From contig OZ286461.1 of NCBI GenBank assembly GCA_965644265.1, forward strand, positions 29,822,001 to 29,886,000: a stretch of DNA of 64,000 nucleotides, written 5' to 3'. Origin of the DNA: Glycera tridactyla. Its lineage: Eukaryota. The notes beneath the pieces were generated by a model. That model was not told the origin of the DNA. It did not search any database and worked only from the letters and a program-made list of their open reading frames with translations. Positions 29,076 through 42,877 of the stretch are shown piece by piece; position 1 is the stretch's first letter; every line of letters starts with the position of its first letter. A program made the position numbers and the translations under genes.

Positions 29076-30796
29076 GACACTGGCCTGCCCCAACTCATCA
29101 ATAAAAGAATGACTTCAATGGGATGGAATGTCTGACACTGGCCTGCTCCAGTTCATCAATAAAAGAATGACTTCGATGGGATGGGATGTCTAACACTGGC
29201 CTGCTGCAACCCATCAATAAAAGAATGACTTCAATGGGATGGAATGTCAGACACTGGCCTGCTCCAATTCATCAATAAAAGAATCACTTCAATGGGATGG
29301 AATGTCAGACACTGGCCTGCTCCAATTCATCAATAAAAGAATGACTTCAATGGGATGGAATGTCTGACACTGGCCTGCTGCAACCCATCAATAAAAGAAT
29401 GACTTCAATGGGATGGAATGTCAGACACTGGCCTGCTCCAACCCATCAATAAAAGAATGACTTCAATAGGATGGAATGTCAGACACTGGCCTGCTCCAAT
29501 TCATCAATAAAAGAATGACTTCAATGGGATGGGATGGTAGACACTGGCCTGCTCCAATTCATCAATAAAAGAATGACTTCAATGGGATGGGATGGTAGAC
29601 ACTGGCCTGCTCCAACTCATCAATAAAAGAATGACTTCAATGGGATGGGATGTCAGACACTGGCCTGCCCCAACCCATCACTAAAAGAATGACTTCAATG
29701 GGATGGAATGTCTGACACTGGCCTGCTCCAATTCATCAATAAAAGAATGACTTCAATGGGATGGGATGTCTGACACTGGCCTGCTCCAACTCATCAATAA
29801 AAGAATGACTTCAATGGGATGGGATGTCAGACACTGGCCTGCCCCAACCCATCACTAAAAGAATGACTTCAATGGGATGGAATGTCAGACACTGGCCTGC
29901 TCCAATTCATCAATAAAAGAATGACTTCAATGGGATGGGATGGTAGACACTGGCCTGCTCCAATTCATCAATAAAAGAATGACTTCAATGGGATGGGATG
30001 GTAGACACTGGCCTGCTCCAACTCATCAATAAAAGAATGACTTCAATGGGATGGGATGTCAGACACTGGCCTGCCCCAACCCATCACTAAAAGAATGACT
30101 TCAATGGGATGGAATGTCTGACACTGGCCTGCTCCAATTCATCAATAAAAGAATGACTTCAATGGGATGGGATGTCTGAAACTGGCCTGCTCCAACTCAT
30201 CAATAAAAGAATGACTTCAATGGGATGGGATGTCAGACACTGGCCTGCCCCAACCCATCACTAAAAGAATGACTTCAATGGGATGGAATGTCAGACACTG
30301 GCCTGCTCCAATTCATCAATAATAGAATGACTTCAATGGGATGGGATGTAAGACACTGGCCTGCTCCAATTCATCAATAAAAGAATGACTTCAATGGGAT
30401 GGGATGGTAGACACTGGCCTGCTCCAATTCATCGATAAAAGAATGACTTCAATGGGATGGAATGTCTGACACTGGCCTGCTCCAATTCATCAATGAAAGA
30501 ATGACTTCAATGGGATAGAATGTCAGACACTGGCCTGCCCCAACCCATCAATAAAAGAATGACTTCAATGGGATGGGATGTCAGACACTGGCCTGCCCCA
30601 ACCCATCACTAAAAGAATGACTTCAATGGGATGGAATGTCAGACACTGGCCTGCTCCAATTCATCAATAAAAGAATGACTTCAATGGGATGGATGTCAGA
30701 CACTGGCCTGCTCCAATTCATCAATAAAAGAATGACTTCAATGGGATGGGATATCAGACACTGGCCTGCCCCAACTCATCAATAATAGAATGACTT
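29076..30796. repeat. 58-bp tandem satellite, about 30 copies
   Basis: Unit GACACTGGCCTGCTCCAATTCATCAATAAAAGAATGACTTCAATGGGATGGAATGTCA; starts at 29076, 29134, 29192 and onward; no spacers. Confidence 0.97.
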
Positions 30797-32690: not shown

Positions 32691-33229
32691 AATGATCCAT
32701 TCCGCACTAATGAAAGCACCCCGGGCCAGGATGCTGTGAAGGCTTGAATAATTCATACCGAAAATAGTTCGTAGTACACAATATGATAAAGCATTGAAAG
32801 TCTATCATACAAGAGAATGTTCTGAATTATGTTCTTACTGTCAAGTAAATGTGCTCATTTTCCATGAATTTCGTCTTCGCAGCACGATTTTGATCACCCC
32901 CAGAGAGATTGTCTTTGTCAAATTTCGTATCAGAGGGTCCCATACGCTAGGTCAATAATTGAATGTCTTGTGAACAGCAAAGAATAGTTAGCGAGACACT
33001 CGGGTAATGACCCTTGGTGTGATTATTCAAGACTCCTTGATGCCCAATGAAAGGTGAATGATATGAATAATGTTATATCATGGTAAGGGGCTGTCTGTGT
33101 GACTCGAAATGCATGCTCTATTACTCTACAAGACTGCATTCACATGAATGCATCACATTCCACGGTATACAACATCGGGAAAATATTTCTCAGATTACAT
33201 ATGAGGATTTTGATTATGAGTGCAACTCA

Positions 33230-33459
33230 TCAATATTCAAGATGACAAGTTGTCTTGTCAGTAGAGATGGAATATGCCAGACATGGTTGTCCTTGTTCAT
33301 ACATCAAGCAGTTCAGGGCACAAGAAATATGCACAGGGTACACAGCTGGCAGTGACAAAATATCGGGCATCGCCGCTGGTGAATAGAGATCTCTGTATTT
33401 GAATGTGTATGTATCGATTTCATTCCCAGTCTTTGTGACTCGCTTCTCCACAGAGGGAA
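33230..33459 (-). CDS. DM9-PAN last exon (linker plus PAN/apple-like domain)
   Basis: Strong acceptor TTATTTTTCAG, phase 1; [33 protein letters not shown]. Confidence 0.72.
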
Positions 33460-36400
33460 CTGAAAAATAAGAAAAGATGATGAGTTATTATGGAATAATT
33501 ATTTCCAGTGCTGGTGCTCGATATTGATATAAATTCATAAATTGAAATCATGGATGTGTGGGCCACAGTGACTCATTTAGTATGAACCCACATCAGCAAG
33601 AGGGCTAGGGGCCTGTAGGGAGCCAGGGGACCTATACCACGAGTTGTTCAGCACAGGTACAGGGACCCAGTCCACCTAGGATGCAGGTGCACTCAAAATG
33701 GTGCAGGTTCAGTCAATTGCCATGCTGGTAATTGATAGGACTTCCATTCTGAGCGTGATCACTTGTTAGTGAAATGGGCCCCTGGACTCTCTGAGAGAAC
33801 TCGCTCACTAAATCAGACAGAATGTACTCGCTAGGTTATCTGTACACACTGAGCCCATTTGACTGATGTTTCATGAGTAGGCCCCGCCCACCATGCCCAA
33901 CAGTGATTTTCATGCTACCAGAAACTGAAATTTGATGAGTGAATGTTATATAATGATTGCATGGACACTATTGCTTATCTCACATAATCTTAAATAGTGG
34001 CTATGTAGCAGCAGTGACAGCATAATTCCACATCAAAAGGACATGGGTGTGTGTCTACTGCTTTGTGGATATCCACTGGGATCACAATGAATCATTAGCC
34101 CTATTCGACTGGTCGGTTTCGTTGAGTACGACCAGGTCGTTGAGTACATTTTCTATTCGGGTGGTCGCTTAACACTTTTTCGTTGCATACAATCTCAACG
34201 GTTGTTTGACTGCGTTGAACTTGTTGAACGAAACCTATTCGGGTGGCCTACGACCATTGAGTACATTTCTGTCAACGCACATTCAACGAAATCGACCAGT
34301 CGAATAGGCCTAATCATCACAGGAATAGGGGCTCAGCACACTATATGACTATTTCATATGAACAATACTTGGCAGTGGATTTGGTTAACGTTTTCTCTGT
34401 TAGCCAAACTGAATAGCGTGCTATTAGTGAGAATACCTGCTGGTCTCACTGAGCCAACTTAGATCCCACATAGTAACTCAGGTGGAACGAACTCCCCGAA
34501 ACCCCCTGTACATTATGAACTATATCGATCTGGCAAGCTGATAGGTACATTGGACCGACACACAGCTCCTGATAATAACGGAAAACCAGGGACACACATT
34601 TTTTGACATATTCATACCTGTAGTGGCCCAAATTGACCGTCAAGGCACATCCTAACGTCTAAACGTCGGTGATTGCCTCACAACATTGATTGTCCTGAAA
34701 TTATTAGTTGATTCTAGCCCTTCCCATTCCCTAGACATAGTTCAGCAATCACCCCATGACATTCACATGACACTAACGCTAACATGCCTAAGTTGATCTC
34801 TCCTGGGTGATAGCAACTGAATGGGCTAAGGCTACTGCAGCCATCATTGAAGACTGAAGCTGAAACAGCCAAATCACACTTTTATAGATCTATGATAGGA
34901 ATGTTGACAGATTAATGTCACAAGATGCCGCCGGGTTAGGAGATGGAGAGCCTAGGTTCAACCAACAATCTCATCATGTATAGGTCCGGACTACTTTCGA
35001 ACGAAATGTAAGAACTGCTAGGCAGTATGTGATATGGAGTGAGCTGTGATATTGTAAATATGCCAGGACTATAGAAGATTTATATGTGAATCCATCTGGC
35101 ATTATTGTGACTTCGTCTGGGGTCTTTGTTTATCATTTGATCAATCATAGCATAAAACATTTGATGGAATCAATGTGAAAATTGTACCAAAAAGAGCATT
35201 TCGAAGGAATCAAACGCCAAGAATGGCACAGCATTTTTTTCTGGTTGAAATAGGTCATCACTAGAGTCATAATATTCATAGGTTGGCAAATACATGGACA
35301 TAGGTTAAAGTTCTTAGTCACACTTGATGTAAAGCTGTATTTCATAAATTCAACTTTCCGTAGGGGATCTAGAAGGAGGCGTCTCGAATATTCTCAGCAA
35401 TGCTCACTGCATGGGCAGATGACATAAAACAGACAGCGGACCGATCACCCAACTACTCAACTACAAAGTGAACTACACCTGTTGGCACTAAGAGAAGATC
35501 CATCGCCGTTGATGATTTTGCATTTCCGATTTGATACCAGCACCTTCCAGTTTGTGGAATATAACCTCCGGCATATGGCGTCCGACACACATATGCTGGA
35601 TTTCCCTGACTGTCATAGCCTCCTTCAATAACTCCTGGTGGAAGAGGGAAGCCGGCAGTCGAATCATATTCACTCCAATAATAGTCTTCATCGGTGATCT
35701 CCAGCAACTGCAAATATTATGTAATTGATGATAGGTTTGTAAGTATTATGTCAGATACCAGAATAAGTAGAGTCAAGCTTCTTTTTTCAGTAAGTTTCAT
35801 GAACATGAGGGGACACCATTAAAAAAATTCATGACCAGATTTGATTAGATATGGGAGCGTCTGCTAGGTGCCAGCGACTGCACAACGGAACCGAAACCTT
35901 GAATTTCGGAGGAAACCTACATTTATTGGAGCAATAAGTGGATGAAAGTAGTGGAAAATTGCGAATAGAGTAAGGAGAAGAGGTGTAGAAAAACATTTGT
36001 GTCGAGGGGTTCACAATGGAAAGACGTGGCGAATAGTGGAGATGGGTTGGCAAAGAGGGCAGCAGTGATGAAAATAAAGGAGATTATTTTGTTTGTTTGA
36101 GGTTTAACGGCATGTATAAACCCTAGGGTTATGTACGCCATATATATGTAGTGGCGATGCATAAAGTCGGGGACGTCCTCTCGGATGTGTGACCGAAGAA
36201 AATTTGAACAAACTTGTTCAAAGTCCACCTTATATAGTTCTGGGTAGCGCATCGTCGTTACTGGGTGATCATGCATTGTTGCCTGCCAATTGGTTCTATG
36301 GTGCTTAGCAACCAGACTCCTCTCACCTGCTCCTTCAAAATATGGAAGGGGTTCTTGGATCTGTCTGGAGAAGGAACGCTTTCAAAAAGTTTTGTCACCA

Positions 36401-39400
36401 AATGTTCGAAAAAATGTCTTTCAGCAGAAAACACACAATTACTTCATAAAAATCTGATAAATGAGGTGTACATTGTCCAAATTAAACATATTTGGATACC
36501 ATCTTCTTCGGTTTCTGAGTTGGCACATGCATGCATAAAGTCGGGGGCGAGCTCGCGGATGACTGACCGAAGGGATGCTTGCATGGGTGGATGGATGGAT
36601 GGATGGATGGGTGGATTGATGGGTGGATGGATTCTTGCATATATGCATGCGTGGGTGAATGGATGCAGGTATGCATGGGTGGATGGATGCAGAGAGATAT
36701 GCTTTATACATAATGAAGCATGGAGAATTGATTAGGAAGAGAGATAGATAGAGAGAGAGAAAGAGAGAGAGGGAGGGAAAGGGATAAATGGGGTGTTAGT
36801 ATAATGAGAGGAGGAAGGTTNNNNNNNNNNNNNNNNNNNNNNNNNNNNNNNNNNNNNNNNNNNNNNNNNNNNNNNNNNNNNNNNNNNNNNNNNNNNNNNN
36901 NNNNNNNNNNNNNNNNNNNNNNNNNNNNNNNNNNNNNNNNNNNNNNNNNNNNNNNNNNNNNNNNNNNNNNNNNNNNNNNNNNNNNNNNNNNNNNNNNNNN
37001 NNNNNNNNNNNNNNNNNNNNNNNNNNNNNATGTATAGATGCATAGATGGATGCAGGGATGAATGGATCGATGCATGAGTGCATGTATAGATGCACGAATA
37101 CATGGATCGATGCATGCAGCGGATGTATGGATAGATGGATGCAGGGATGAATGTATGTAGTGAAGAGGGCCGAGATGACATCCTTGAAGGGATACCCAGA
37201 GAGGGAGCTATCAAGATGGGAAAATATTTGGATGATACAAAGGAAAGCCAATCATTGACAAGACTGAAAATGAATGATATTCACCGGAGCTATGAGAAAG
37301 ATGGAATGAAAATGCATAGGTCATGTGGGGATTTCAAAGCAGACATACAGCACAAGCTGTATACATTTAAGGGTAAACAGCAGATGCAGAAGGAATAGTG
37401 GACCACTGAAAAGAAGGGAATAAGCGAGATATTGGCAGACAAGACACAATGGAACATCAAGGACCTTCAGAAGCTATACTCAGCATGGGAAGAAAAGGTG
37501 AGAAAAGAACGCCACAGAGTGAAGATTAGGAAAGGAAAGGGAAGCAGGAAACTAAGCCCCCCAAGCAGGTTAAGGCACCCGACCATACCAGGACAAANNN
37601 NNNNNNNNNNNNNNNNNNNNNNNNNNNNNNNNNNNNNNNNNNNNNNNNNNNNNNNNNNNNNNNNNNNNNNNNNNNNNNNNNNNNNNNNNNNNNNNNNNNN
37701 NNNNNNNNNNNNNNNNNNNNNNNNNNNNNNNNNNNNNNNNNNNNNNNNNNNNNNNNNNNNNNNNNNNNNNNNNNNNNNNNNNNNNNNNNNNNNNNNNNNN
37801 NNNNNNNNNNNNNNNNNNNNNNNNNNNNNNNNNNNNNNNNNNNNNNNNNNNNNNNNNNNNNNNNNNNNNNNNNNNNNNNNNNNNNNNNNNNNNNNNNNNN
37901 NNNNNNNNNNNNNNNNNNNNNNNNNNNNNNNNNNNNNNNNNNNNNNNNNNNNNNNNNNNNNNNNNNNNNNNNNNNNNNNNNNNNNNNNNNNNNNNNNNNN
38001 NNNNNNNNNNNNNNTCCATCACCATTGGTCATTGACGTGCAATTATTGAACATGACACTTCTGGATTATTCATAAGTGCGTAGCCTTTATGGACATTGAA
38101 ACCATTAATTGTGTAAATGTTGTTGGCTGAACATCATGCTCACCGTTCAATGAGGTGATATTTCACTTCTAGGAGTCACATGTGGATTGCCTCAATATAT
38201 CAAGAAACACACATCTCGATGGGGTACCATTTCATTTCAAGAAATCACATAATGGGTGCAACACCTCAATCAATATATGAAAGTGCCAACAGTTCTGTGG
38301 GATTATATTCAGTTCTAAGAAGCCAAGTAACGGACAGGTTACTTCAAACTATTCGAATTTACAGACAGCACTGGCACTGATTAATATCAATTGGTAAAGA
38401 CTGAACTCAATTGGGGGTACTGATTGATATGATTTGAGACTCACTTCAATTGGTCCTGAAGTGAAATGCCAAGAACCAGTTGACATGGCCAAGTAGAAGT
38501 AATTGTCACTTGCGGTTGTTTTTCCAACCCATACCCCACCAGAGTGAGCTAGTCTTGCGACATAACCATTGTAGTTAGAGAGATACTTGACAGCCCCTGG
38601 TGGTGGGCTTCCACGAACTGAGGCAGATGAAGGCTTCCAAACCCAATCCACTGAAGAGGCTGAAAAAAAACGAATTCAAAGCACAATCAGTGATCATAAG
38701 CCAGCATTACCACCAACATCACATCTCTTCCTCAATCCGAAGGTGAGATGTGAAAATGAATGAATTAGTGAATACAAGTGAAAATGGATGAATGAATGAA
38801 TGCATGAATGATAAGAACAAAATATATCGTTATAGAAGCCTTGCTCAGAGGACTTCTTGTTTTGTTCAGCCAGGCATTGTTTGCCATATTTCAGTCTTCA
38901 AATTTAGCCACTCTTCCGAATCCCGGGAGAGTGAATTAGATTTCGGGAGTGCGAATATGCCCAACTCACTTTCCAGCTGATGACAATGTGTTGGATTTAG
39001 TGTGAAGAGAGACCCCACTATTTGGACTCCACCAATAACGAGACCCTGTTGCATACAAAATGGCTCTGCATACTCCCGCGTATGTATGATTCTGCTAAAC
39101 ATGGGTTGGTGGGACTTGAGTAGTCATTCACATGACAGACAAGTTAGAATTTGCATCTTGATTATTCACATCTTGCCCTCAAATTAGCCTAGTTTCATGA
39201 AGGGAGTGTGATTGATTTTTATTTTCGTGAAGACTGATATTTTGATGGAAAGTTTGTGCAATAATCCGAAATCATCTCTTCAATCACCAGAAATGACCCC
39301 TTTAGTGTCTGAGAATTCCATCAGTTCTGACCTCCCTCTTGGGACTCAGAAGGGAGCGTCCTGAAGATTCTACTCATGCCCATGACATGGGCAGCTCGTT

Positions 39401-40060
39401 GTTTATCACACAGATATGCCCGTATCCGTGTGGATCAGGCCCGTGTGATCTTGTGATGCGGATCACACGGCCATGTCAAGAGCCGTGACGTCACAATGCA
39501 TTCTTTTGTGCCAGTCAACGTTGCTTGTGGTTTGGGCCACGCCAAGAACCGTGACGTCACAATTGAGTTCACAGGTTAACTGACTGCGTCGCACCTTCGA
39601 TCACACTGCGTCACGGCAATAAACTGACCACGATTCACTTCTACACGATGCCCATATGATAAAATATTCATAATATCTGTGTGATAAAAGCAGGAACGCA
39701 TGATCGTGTTGTGGCAATTGAAGGCTCACACTCGTTGGCGGAGCACGGGACCACACTCCGGCTCCGCCGTCGTGTGCTCCCCGTGCTTCGCCAACTCGTG
39801 TGATCCTTCAACTGCCACCACACGATCATACGTTCCTACTATAAGATGTCACTCACGATATGCAGAACAACTAAGCGAGCACCTATCACCCCTATGCAAA
39901 AGCGACGCAGCGTGATAATAATTGGACTCTGAATCTACTGCTGGCATAATATCACATGGTCATCTAGAGAAATCAGAGCTAACTCACCAACACCTGTGAG
40001 ATGCGAGAGATGAAGCAACATCATGATGAAGCAGCAGCACCATGGATCAGTTGTGAACAT
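33230..40060 (-). CDS. Secreted DM9-repeat (DUF3421) lectin-like protein with C-terminal PAN/apple-like module, about 248 aa; complement join 40060-39988,38659-38445,35707-35479,33459-33230
   Basis: GT-AG introns with matching phases 1/0/1, 747 nt total; hydrophobic N-terminus; two W...PPG(A/V)...Y(V)(A/C)R repeats; C-x3-C-x8-C-x11-C-x-L tail. The alternative acceptor at 38650 is also in frame. Confidence 0.8.
34096..34312. mobile_element. MITE with TAG...CTA termini and 5-bp TSD ATCAT
   Basis: About 30-bp TIRs TAGCCCTATTCGACTGGTCGGTTTCGTTGA / TCAACGAAATCGACCAGTCGAATAGGCCTA; ATCAT at 34091-95 and 34313-17. Confidence 0.8.
35479..35707 (-). CDS. DM9-PAN exon 3 (DM9 repeat 2)
   Basis: TTTGCAG|[42 protein letters not shown]...MDLLLVPT. 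Confidence 0.87.
37160..37597 (+). pseudogene. Probable LINE ORF2 relic (endonuclease-RT linker-like), truncated by an N-gap
   Basis: Purine-rich, stop-interrupted frame ...[37 protein letters not shown]; resemblance judged by eye only. Confidence 0.35.
38445..38659 (-). CDS. DM9-PAN exon 2 (DM9 repeat 1)
   Basis: [42 protein letters not shown]...GPIE; donor GAA|GTGAGT. Confidence 0.8.
38892..39236. mobile_element. hAT6-like family E copy, 6-bp TSD ATATTT
   Basis: CAGTCTTCAAATTTAGCC...GTGAAGACTG flanked by ATATTT on both sides. Confidence 0.8.
39402..39688. mobile_element. Inverted-repeat element with TTTATCACACAGATAT termini
   Basis: 16-bp perfect TIR; internal CCGTGACGTCACAAT present twice. 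Confidence 0.7.
39692..39837. mobile_element. 146-bp hairpin element, imperfect 65-bp arms
   Basis: AGGAACGCATGATCGTG... / ...CACGATCATACGTTCCT; centre CCGGCTCCGCCGTCG. Confidence 0.8.
39988..40060 (-). CDS. DM9-PAN exon 1, signal peptide [24 protein letters not shown]
   Basis: GACATG start; phase-1 donor G|GTGAGT matches the phase-1 acceptor at 38659/38650. Confidence 0.65.
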
Positions 40061-42877
40061 GTCGGTTTTGGATACTCGAATGATCCAAATATTACTTGGC
40101 ACTGCTATGGAGTGTGAGTGGTTCAATGCAGCACTTACATCGCAGGTGATAAACCACATTATATTGATCAAAATATCTGAATTATACATGTGTTTGAGCG
40201 ATGTATTTATTGAATGGTCTGCAAATTATTCGTCATTTTTTCCTTATTCAGTTTGACCATTTTTCTATATTATTGAATCAATATTCACGACAGTTCAGCT
40301 TTTGCACCATTGAGTGGCTGCCTCTTTGAATCTTTAGTAGGCAGGATTACAGCTCTTGAATTTCCACCCATTATTGTTTTTCAATCATTCTGATTTTTCC
40401 ACAGGGATGTAGGATTGGTCCAAGGGCCTGCAAATTATTCATAATTTCATTCAGGATTACAAGCAGTCCTTGACCACCATTTTCTCTTAATGCAATAACC
40501 ATATTGGAAGACTCCTAAAAGGATCTGTCATGCTGCTGAGGATATTTCCCTACCTGCAGTTATATGTCATCATGAATGCATCAAATTGTCAGACTCCAGA
40601 CAGTCACTTAGAAATGTCAGCATAAGGACCATCATGTTTACGTGAGACATTTGCAGTCTGTGTTCAGGGTTCGTAAGAGTGAGGCTTGCAGAGGACCGAG
40701 GTTCCAGGTCCCGTTGGTCACGAACACATGACATACATGATTCTTTAGGTTGATAGATATAGACTTCAATCAATCAGGATCATGGTGGAAATTTGATGGA
40801 GTAATGGATAGAATCGATGCTTGCAAATTTCGAGGTCATCATTTATTTTGAATAATGCCCTCGATCGATATGTATCCATACCGGAGTTTTATGCGTATAC
40901 ATGCAATCTTACAACCCTGGAGTTCCAGCACAAAATCAACGAGATCATTCATATGTGCCTACATGCCTTGACAATCAAGTATGGTATCAAAATGCTATAT
41001 GCAAATGTGGTATAATGATATTATGTGTACATTTTTCATAGCCAATGCCATATATATTTGACTTACATTGCGATCGAAAAAATCACCCCGAATGGCCAAA
41101 TCGAACTTGCTGAACTTGCGGAACATGGTTTCCTATTGATGACTGAACATTCGAAACAGATGGCATAGTCAGTATCATTTGCATCTCTACTATGCAATGT
41201 GTATGTGTGCGTCTGTGTAAGCATGCTTGTGTATTCCTACTCCTTGGATACTGAGTGTATTTTGGTGACTCCTCATCCTTTTTGGTATCTCCTAATCTAT
41301 TGTCAAGTACAGGTGCTTCTGGGTTTTGGCTCCAAGCGAACCGATCAACAATCAAGTACCAACCTAAGGATGTAAGATACATGGTAACAGGGAAGATTAC
41401 ATCTCCATTGTCCAAAGATGACATAAACTAGAATGACGTAGGCATTCACCTAATCCAAACTCACTGCTTCTGGGCCAAATTGGATTCAAATGCAGTCAAT
41501 GGCGGAGGCATGACGGAGTTCTCTCAGCGTGAAACAAACTTTGATGACTCGGTCTCTTTCAAAGTTCAATTCGAACACTTGTCAAAGGCAAGCAAGATAT
41601 CACTCAGCCTATAGAACCATGAAATATGTAAGAAAAAGATGTCTATTTATCTAGATGTTATCAAGATGAATGAGGACATCAACACCCAAAGGTTGAGAGG
41701 TCTCATACCATCGGCCGGCATCATCCAAGAAAATATGACTTCCTTTCAAAAATGAGAACAGGAAATATAGATATAATGATAAAAATATGGAGACATATGC
41801 ATGAGAGAGAGGGGGGGGGGGGGGGGCAGTAAAGAATCAACCAAAAGTTTCCTAGGGTGACGACATATTTCACACTCAATTGAGAAATCTCAGTGTATGC
41901 AGTCCACCAGAGAAGCCATCGAGCGAACTCAAATGCCGCTGCCTATAGTAGGGACGGCTCCCGGCAGCGGTGCCCTTTTTCTTCAGCATTCTCAGTTTTT
42001 CAGATATTCAACCCAAACAAACGAACAAAACAAACTAACATCAATGGCAAACACCGACAGCAACAGCTATTTGTTTCATTTTCAATATTTATTCATCATG
42101 ATCAGTCAATACAATTAAACACGTGGTGGTGTTCATCTCATATATACACGATTCAACTACGAACAATAGGTAGGAGATGAAATATATACCGATGAGTTCA
42201 TATGCTGATATGATGATAGGACGATGAGGGATAGATGGATGAATGCTTGAATGCACCCCGTGTATGTTGATTCAATATTTAAATAGTAATTAATGAAGCA
42301 CAGAATGGTATTAGACACATTAGTCATGTTATAGATGCTTGTGCTGATCCAGTATTGCCCATTACAAGAATATAGACATGATAGAGCCTATCAGATTGTG
42401 CTTAGACCGGATTCGTGCTCAGCACAGGTGAATGATTTTATAGTGGGATGAATGGAAATCTATCGCTCAAGACAGGTATGACACTACACCATTTTACGAT
42501 GCTGGGTAGATGGTTGGAATCGTATGCATGTATGAAGCCGATGGTTTCACTGCTGTGCACGCCCTATCTGATGCATGTTCAGTCCTCAGCTAGCACGATT
42601 CTCACACACCCTGAACAAAATACGATGGAGGATCTGAAAAGTTAGCTGAATGACCGACTACCGTCAAAATTCTATCATCTGTATTTTCTATCAAAATATG
42701 CTATCACCAGGTCTCTTATTTTTCATCTATTTTCACCTATTTTCTATCTTCACGCTCCTGGACATCGGCCTGATAATGGCTATCTGACCATGGCCCAACA
42801 TCAAATCAATGTGCAAAACTAGGTTGGCCCAACAGCGGCAGCCAGCATTGGGCCAGCATGGCCAGGGATATTCCTGT

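Follow-up and report, generated by a model that had tools for sequence, protein, structure and literature searches.

A minus-strand gene of Glycera tridactyla combines two DM9 repeats with a predicted signal peptide and a four-cysteine tail module resembling a PAN core

In oyster and in Fasciola, DM9 proteins are mannose-binding pattern-recognition proteins (PMC4932603, PMC5712788, PMC8106982). One of them is CGL1/CgDM9CP-1 of Crassostrea gigas (PDB 5id8, 5mh3), a protein of 143 residues whose native N-terminus is acetylated and which has no signal peptide, no disulfides and no further domain (PMC4932603). To bind mannose, CGL1 requires two of its residues, Asp22 and Lys43 (PMC4932603, PMC5712788). 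Fusions of DM9 to other domains are known as well, namely to aerolysin/ETX-MTX2 in the natterins and to farnesoic acid O-methyltransferase in insects (PMC5712788, PMC8402412). Here we describe a gene on the minus strand at positions 33230-40060 of a stretch of 64,000 nucleotides (nt) from Glycera tridactyla (GenBank assembly GCA_965644265.1, contig OZ286461.1, positions 29,822,001 to 29,886,000 of the forward strand). The whole stretch is called the window below, its positions are counted from its first letter, and the gene and its predicted product are called the window gene and the window protein. The gene carries two DM9 repeats between a hydrophobic first exon and a C-terminal module with four cysteines. 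As a class of lectins and pattern-recognition proteins, DM9 proteins are young, and most of those known are either small proteins that lack a signal peptide or the targeting end of pore-forming natterins.

Exon-by-exon translation of the locus gave four open exons with compatible phases, separated by introns of the GT..AG type. The exons sum to 747 nt, i.e. 248 codons and a stop codon, and the phases along the gene are 1 / 1-0 / 0-1 / 1. The features of the gene are as follows.

40071..40085, minus strand: conserved block of the 5′ untranslated region, 15 nt just upstream of the start codon
39988..40060, minus strand: exon 1, start codon (ATG) and probable signal peptide; 73 nt, 24 codons plus 1 base, donor GTGAGT
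38445..38659, minus strand: exon 2, DM9 repeat 1; 215 nt, acceptor ...ttttcag, donor GTGAGT, phase 1 to 0
35708..38444, minus strand: intron 2, with both assembly gaps and CATC/CCAT-type low-complexity runs inside
35479..35707, minus strand: exon 3, DM9 repeat 2, containing two Cys that are invariant in the family; 229 nt, acceptor ...tttgcag, donor GTGTAG, phase 0 to 1
33230..33459, minus strand: exon 4, C-terminal four-Cys module resembling a PAN core, and stop codon; 230 nt, acceptor ...tttttcag

The acceptors of exons 2, 3 and 4 are all pyrimidine-rich and end in cag, and the donors begin with GT. Codons split at the exon joins read GCC (Ala) and GTT (Val). The TGA stop codon at 33232-33230 has a second TGA directly behind it. 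The gene structure is read from the sequence, and the four-exon gene at 33230-40060 is intact. A preliminary description of this DNA had proposed four phase-compatible exons with roughly one module per exon. Our results agree with both proposals: all exons are open, the splice sites are canonical, the phases fit a division into modules, and a compact, gap-free paralogue (L003) repeats the four exons and their phases. The same description had named an in-frame stop at 35453. We found this TAG at 35455-35453, where it would terminate a transcript that retains intron 3.

Two runs of N interrupt the locus, at 36821-37029 and 37598-38014. Both lie within intron 2 (38444-35708), and the nearest splice sites are 430 nt and 1113 nt away, so that no exon or reading frame crosses a gap. 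The runs are embedded in CATC/CCAT-type low-complexity sequence, which is a common reason for assembly breaks. A hidden exon across the gaps was considered and rejected. Searching the 64-kb window by tblastn with all four exon peptides (E-value, E, up to 10) returned no further family exons, with the sequence between the gaps included, and gap-free paralogues have no exon there; intron 2 of L003 measures 543 nt without an extra exon. A false join of two half-genes was rejected as well, since strand, order and phase fit and exons 2, 3 and 4 share their nearest paralogue groups. The groups on C7 (~120.1 Mb) and C42 (~42.35-42.48 Mb) are among the closest relatives of all three exons alike. One of the intron 2 gaps may hold a collapsed gene copy.

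Relatives of the gene were searched for with the exon peptides in six frames of the worm's own 2.04-Gb genome. These searches gave 31 matches for exon 2, 44 for exon 3 and 58 for exon 4. Sorting the matches by place resulted in 38 exon-4-like loci, and 34 of the 38 are preceded on their own strand by a DM9 exon 3 at a distance of up to 15 kb, in most cases 0.7-3.5 kb. The family loci form tandem clusters on C17 (~11 copies), C51, C42, C11, C7 and C31; the window gene is solitary, and the clusters that share its chromosome are tens of Mb away. The order of exons 2, 3 and 4 is retained even in copies that are 34-50 % identical. Exon 2, which encodes repeat 1, is the most divergent exon across the family. 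Most copies have the exon-4 acceptor in common (...ttcag followed by TT, phase 1). The stop codon stands directly after Leu-Glu-Tyr (LEY) in 14 of 22 copies and one codon later in 6 of 22, and in two copies on C11 the reading continues for at least 3 more codons past LEY. When the Pfam DM9 model was run against the whole genome in six frames, no match was obtained at a genome-wide E <= 0.001, because single repeats are too weak for such a threshold; the protein queries did detect the family.

To describe selection we used the ratio of non-synonymous to synonymous substitution rates (dN/dS). In comparison with paralogues, the ratio was 0.08-0.56 in exon 4, 0.12-0.60 in exon 3 and 0.20-0.49 in exon 2, and saturation of synonymous sites was frequent. 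Against close paralogues the values were 0.21-0.56 for exon 4 and 0.12-0.6 for exons 2 and 3. As these ratios lie well below 1, exons 2, 3 and 4 are protein-coding and under selection. The genome thus contains a family of about 38 loci under purifying selection, and the repetition of the same exon order at these loci, together with the low dN/dS, places the gene model far beyond chance. The preliminary description had missed this family.

Identity between the window gene and its paralogues is uneven from exon to exon. In one paralogue it amounts to 58/67/81 % for exons 2/3/4 and in another to 61/69/61 %, the loci compared being G000:C7:120111746-120122885 and G000:C42:42351699-42354032. Copies may have undergone gene conversion or exchanged exons, as this unevenness hints. 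A further copy on the minus strand of C51, L063:1633-3100 (G000:C51:15021132-15022599), contains a 75-bp (25-codon) tandem repeat of ~20 units with a 91 % match. The repeat unit originated in the part of the tail module that precedes the Cys (..HIKHRDLYSPSAMPHFISLQVPYPV..), and a normal Cys core adjoins. Frames shift along the repeat, which stays open for up to 270-320 codons, and this copy is either an expanded-linker variant or decaying.

For the DM9 assignment, the exons were scanned singly against Pfam DM9 (PF11901 / DUF3421), for which the gathering score of 26.2 bits applies to the whole protein. Exon 2 alone matched model positions 56-110 (E 0.0095, 16.3 bits), and exon 3 alone matched positions 64-94 (E 7.6e-4, 19.8 bits). 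Two exons, of 71 and 76 codons, therefore match an overlapping part of the DM9 model, as tandem repeats. Of the paralogue copies of exon 3, 11 of 18 match DM9 (best E 3.5e-5), and no other family recurs. The exon 3 profile gave a weak match to oyster CGL1 (‘Natterin-3’, 5mh3/5id8; E 0.2-0.6). In the ESM Atlas, 24 of the 30 clusters nearest to exon 3 formed the top DM9 set, with a score of 0.92 and 205 of 256 shared features, a count that falls in this tool's range for true family members. The profile of exon 2, aligned from 13 paralogue copies, and that of exon 3 could be aligned weakly over a P.G.V...YV.R core (P 0.0049). Exon 2 folded alone reached a predicted local distance difference test score (pLDDT) of 53.9 and is unusable. 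A word-index protein search of a collection of 5.8 billion clusters with a paralogue DM9 exon in its 176-residue open frame, which is limited by word sharing and length, returned no relatives. We accept the DM9 kinship of exons 2 and 3 on the basis of these sequence comparisons. The two DM9 repeats of the preliminary description are thus retained, with Pfam matches that are weak for each exon, matches in most exon 3 copies, and DM9 neighbours in the ESM Atlas.

Comparison with CGL1 reveals both likenesses and differences. Like CGL1, the window protein has two tandem DM9 repeats of ~70 residues each, and its ...GG.D and ...VAR/VCR... motifs align with CGL1 residues 20-32, the match of the exon 3 profile being weak. 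Unlike CGL1, it has a signal-type exon, a Cys pair in repeat 2 that is invariant in the family (Cys41 and Cys56 of exon 3) and a Cys module of 75 residues. The equivalents of Asp22 and Lys43, which belong to one site in CGL1, are split between the two repeats of the window protein. Repeat 1 keeps the Lys of a ..W.GK motif at the Lys43 position (hand alignment) and has a 3-residue deletion at the GG.D site, whereas repeat 2 keeps the Asp (GGYD) and has Gly at the Lys43 position (profile alignment). Because the pair is split, the ligand may differ from mannose. Binding of a sugar is plausible; specificity for mannose is not implied.

A different arrangement of DM9-like exons was seen at G000:C4:23365771-23397561 on the minus strand. 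At least 15 such exons, 29-41 % identical to exons 2 and 3, follow each other densely, and no match to the tail module was found nearby. This run probably consists of one gene or several genes of another, multi-repeat DM9 type.

The first exon is conserved in five further paralogue copies, 450-1330 nt upstream of exon 2, in each case 73 nt long, in the same phase and with a strong donor, GTGAGT or GTAAGT. A sixth candidate first exon has 70 nt and the donor GTAGGT. The peptides encoded by the first exons share a short polar start, a hydrophobic core of 10-11 residues and an end made of small residues. Across these exons, the best 9-residue Kyte-Doolittle mean is 2.5-3.3, and it is 2.9 in the window gene, where Gly-Val-Ala precedes the putative mature start Ser-Ser-Val-Asp-Trp. 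The mature part contains six Cys, all of them family-invariant, two in repeat 2 and four in the tail. The C-terminus lacks a hydrophobic tail, and part of the paralogues carry an N-x-S/T sequon at one spot, read by eye. The preliminary description had pointed to a signal peptide, and the hydrophobic exon of 24 codons with its five conserved counterparts speaks for it: exon 1 probably encodes a cleavable signal peptide. Secretion of the protein is a well-founded prediction, because the conserved hydrophobic first exon is accompanied by six invariant Cys in the mature part; CGL1, which is cytosolic, differs in lacking disulfides and in its acetylated N-terminus (PMC4932603). The 15-nt block before the ATG is also present in the paralogue L023, yet 1 nt out of frame relative to the ATG. 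From this shift we conclude that the block is untranslated leader and that the shared start codon is the ATG at 40060. Two upstream in-frame ATGs were rejected as the true start for the same reason.

In 22 copies of exon 4, i.e. the window gene and 21 paralogues, the Cys framework C46-x3-C50-x8-C59-x11-C71 is invariant, as are L51 and L73-E74-Y75. A CL after the second Cys and an.AY. after the third mirror PAN modules of the worm's own genome, in which the spacing is C-x3-C-x5/7-C-x10/11-C. Alignment of the exon-4 profile with these modules in hhalign gave a score of 24.5 (P 3e-4) and placed all four Cys in register with those of 17 PAN modules. In 150 full column shuffles this score was never reached (mean 10.0, standard deviation 2.3). 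The same was true for 150 shuffles in which the Cys columns were held fixed (mean 11.6, maximum 22.5). Since the score also exceeds that of the Cys-fixed shuffles, residues around the Cys contribute to it. In an AlphaFold2 (AF2) model of exon 4, which reached a pLDDT of ~90 over residues 30-75 only, a strand is followed by a helix with Cys46 and Cys50 and then by strands at Cys59 and Cys71. This strand-helix-strand-strand order is the layout of the PAN core. Among the ESM Atlas neighbours of exon 4, all that carry a family name are PAN (scores 0.86-0.91).

The likeness to PAN/apple domains (PAN_1, PF00024, and its clan) therefore consists of the helix with Cys-x3-Cys, the two following strands with one Cys each, and the register of the four Cys. 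The differences are equally clear. The protein ends four residues after Cys71, whereas PAN modules of the same genome run ~25-40 residues further; the residues past the fourth Cys and the outer ‘apple’ disulfide are both missing; and a conserved pre-Cys stretch (..R.LYSP.AMP..) has no PAN counterpart. Exon 4 can thus be at most a truncated PAN core. On balance, we read it as a truncated and strongly diverged PAN core, a family membership that the data suggest rather than demonstrate. Of the ‘PAN/apple-like’ module in the preliminary description, the four-Cys C-terminal module with its Cys in PAN register stands; the name PAN is supported in part, as no Pfam PAN match was obtained and the module ends after the fourth Cys.

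Taken together, we favour, with some confidence, the explanation that the window gene belongs to a lineage-restricted family encoding secreted proteins with two DM9 repeats and a PAN-like tail, which would act as soluble binders of glycans or microbes. The precursor of 248 residues would consist of a cleavable signal peptide, the two DM9 repeats and the short C-terminal module. If the protein resembles CGL1/CgDM9CP-1, the two repeats would jointly form a single lectin body rich in beta structure, and its ligand sites would lie where the repeats meet. The tail module, most likely a truncated and highly diverged PAN/apple core, would be held by two disulfides. In the extracellular space, the DM9 pair would recognise the ligand, and the PAN-like tail would provide a second contact, either by self-association or by attachment to a matrix, mucus or cell-surface component. 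The window protein may have a role in mucus, venom or immunity; the preliminary description had suggested a pattern-recognition, mucus or venom component.

Several observations weigh against this explanation. Each DM9 exon alone scores below the whole-protein cut-off of 26.2 bits, the ligand pair of CGL1 is not found together in one repeat, and the signal-type exon has no basic n-region. On the gene strand, no canonical AATAAA is present within 5 kb past the stop codon, and a search of public sequencing runs with positions 33000-40100 listed no run. Further points concern exon 4, where they fit an alternative in which the C-terminal module is not derived from PAN and is instead a new small disulfide-rich alpha/beta domain that has converged on the Cys spacing and the layout of the PAN core. 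None of the 22 exon-4 copies matched any Pfam family even at E <= 10. The exon-4 profile found no chain among the PDB sequences at E <= 10, and a full HMMER search of 1.84 billion public protein representatives, which include very many PAN proteins, gave 0 matches. A word-index search of a collection of 5.8 billion clusters, in which the visible candidates are those of 41-131 residues, found none either. With a hidden Markov model of the 17 own-genome PAN modules, exon-4 frames ranked just below true PAN at E 0.18-1.4, mixed with decoys. Structural comparison remained similarly vague. Foldseek listed the HGF N domain and plasminogen with the top probabilities (0.54-0.69), in rows that are non-significant (E >= 1; nothing at E <= 0.001). 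VIA-align, which is independent of Foldseek, had the HGF NK1 N domain (7mob_A) in its top row with Z 3.8 and a root-mean-square deviation of 2.4 over 46 residues, and it also listed the Sarcocystis PAN lectin SML-2 (2yil, Z 3.6), plasminogen (4a5t, Z 3.1) and the apple domains of Toxoplasma MIC4 (4a5v, Z 2.7). By the aligner's own warning a Z of up to 3.8 is in the noise range, and RRM-like and other beta-alpha-beta folds score equally. The module also lacks the whole portion that real PAN domains have behind the fourth Cys. Convergence does not readily account, however, for an hhalign score that none of the 150 shuffles with fixed Cys columns attained, for the register of all four Cys with PAN modules of the same genome, for the recurrence of the PAN chains of HGF, plasminogen, SML-2 and MIC4 in the top rows of two aligners, or for nearest named ESM Atlas clusters that are all PAN. 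Additionally, the genome is unusually rich in PAN exons: a first look gave 882 candidates for PAN_1 exons, at least 150 exons are above the Pfam cut-off (all 150 that were scored), and exon 4 opens in phase 1. It seems unlikely, though it deserves serious weight, that the module arose outside the PAN family.

The missing polyadenylation signal near the stop and the blank in the sequencing runs would also be expected if the window copy were not a working gene, being silent, decaying or spliced otherwise; retention of intron 3, for example, would end the protein at the TAG and leave a plain secreted two-DM9 protein. The solitary position of the copy and the two gaps that interrupt intron 2 point in the same direction. 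On the other hand, the four exons are open with canonical splice sites, the dN/dS against close paralogues is well below 1 in exons 2, 3 and 4, and most of the family retains the exon-4 acceptor together with the stop after LEY. The blank itself is weak evidence and not a sign of silence, as a run must hold 1/20 of the sampled words to be listed and the exons make up only ~1/10 of the 7.1 kb query. We therefore consider a non-working copy improbable. Still less probable is a toxin or venom-type component, in which a natterin-like DM9 targeting unit would carry the PAN-like tail in place of a pore-forming domain. Natterins do join DM9 repeats to an aerolysin/ETX-MTX2 domain (PMC8402412, PMC5712788), and the family is expanded in tandem arrays. 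The window protein resembles natterins (DM9 or jacalin plus aerolysin) in that an N-terminal DM9 unit is fused to a different C-terminal module, but it contains no aerolysin/ETX-MTX2 domain (no Pfam match) and ends in the four-Cys PAN-like mini-module. The frame stops right after LEY or one codon later in 20 of 22 copies, with no aerolysin-type or other exon following, and no Pfam family other than DM9 was found in the exon scans. We give this toxin reading very little weight and continue with the secreted two-DM9 protein with a PAN-like tail.

Other DM9 fusions, such as that with farnesoic acid O-methyltransferase and the four-repeat PRS1 of Anopheles, likewise combine DM9 repeats with modules (PMC5712788, PMC8402412). 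Full-text searches returned no literature that joins DM9 to a PAN/apple module, and in the ESM Atlas no PAN family is assigned to any of the listed DM9 clusters. These results are in line with the preliminary description, which knew of no such combination, and the combination of DM9 with a PAN-like tail is absent from the literature and the protein libraries as far as these searches reach. What appears to be new, judging from the sequence, is a secreted-type, disulfide-bearing protein with two DM9 repeats and a PAN-core-like tail at ~38 loci; DM9 and PAN themselves are known kinds.

The intron phases are suggestive of how such a gene may have been assembled. Exons 2 and 3, the DM9 pair, make up a 1-1 cassette that stands between a leader exon ending in phase 1 and a tail exon beginning in the same phase. 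A symmetrical phase-1 pattern is the classic signature of exon shuffling, and assembly by this route would explain the arrangement. More tentatively, and with more doubt than confidence, the ~38 genes could be regarded as a lineage-specific repertoire for extracellular recognition. In such a repertoire, a signal peptide would precede the fast-diverging DM9 pair, the variable part that reads the ligand, and the conserved, truncated PAN-derived tail would be the constant part for docking to a common partner or for oligomerisation, recruited by phase-1 shuffling from the pool of PAN exons. If this holds true, the family would represent a secreted lectin architecture that is new and for which public protein collections offer no detectable counterpart. 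A classically secreted form of DM9, stabilised by disulfides, equipped with a PAN-like mini-module and present in dozens of copies, would widen the known roles of DM9 proteins, and it offers a testable candidate for defence in the mucus, the coelomic fluid or at the surface of the worm. The tail module would also illustrate the extent to which a PAN core can lose parts while selection still preserves it. The finding is of moderate value, as both building blocks are of known kinds and the function is a prediction.

PAN_1 exons of this genome often stand in tandem runs, for example on C42 at ~45.72-45.78 Mb and 73.3-73.5 Mb and on C18 at ~70.48-70.65 Mb.

Elsewhere in the 64-kb window, nine long open reading frames matched no Pfam family and give the gene no neighbour context. 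A 58-bp satellite occupies 29076-30796, 2.4 kb beyond the stop codon, with 29.7 copies at a 92 % match and an AATAAA in each unit. Two inverted repeats lie within introns of the gene. The one in intron 1 (39689-39840) has arms of 61 nt that are 87 % complementary and 30 nt apart, and the one in intron 3 (34091-34317) has arms of 35 nt that are 91 % complementary and 157 nt apart. Both elements look like miniature transposon insertions.

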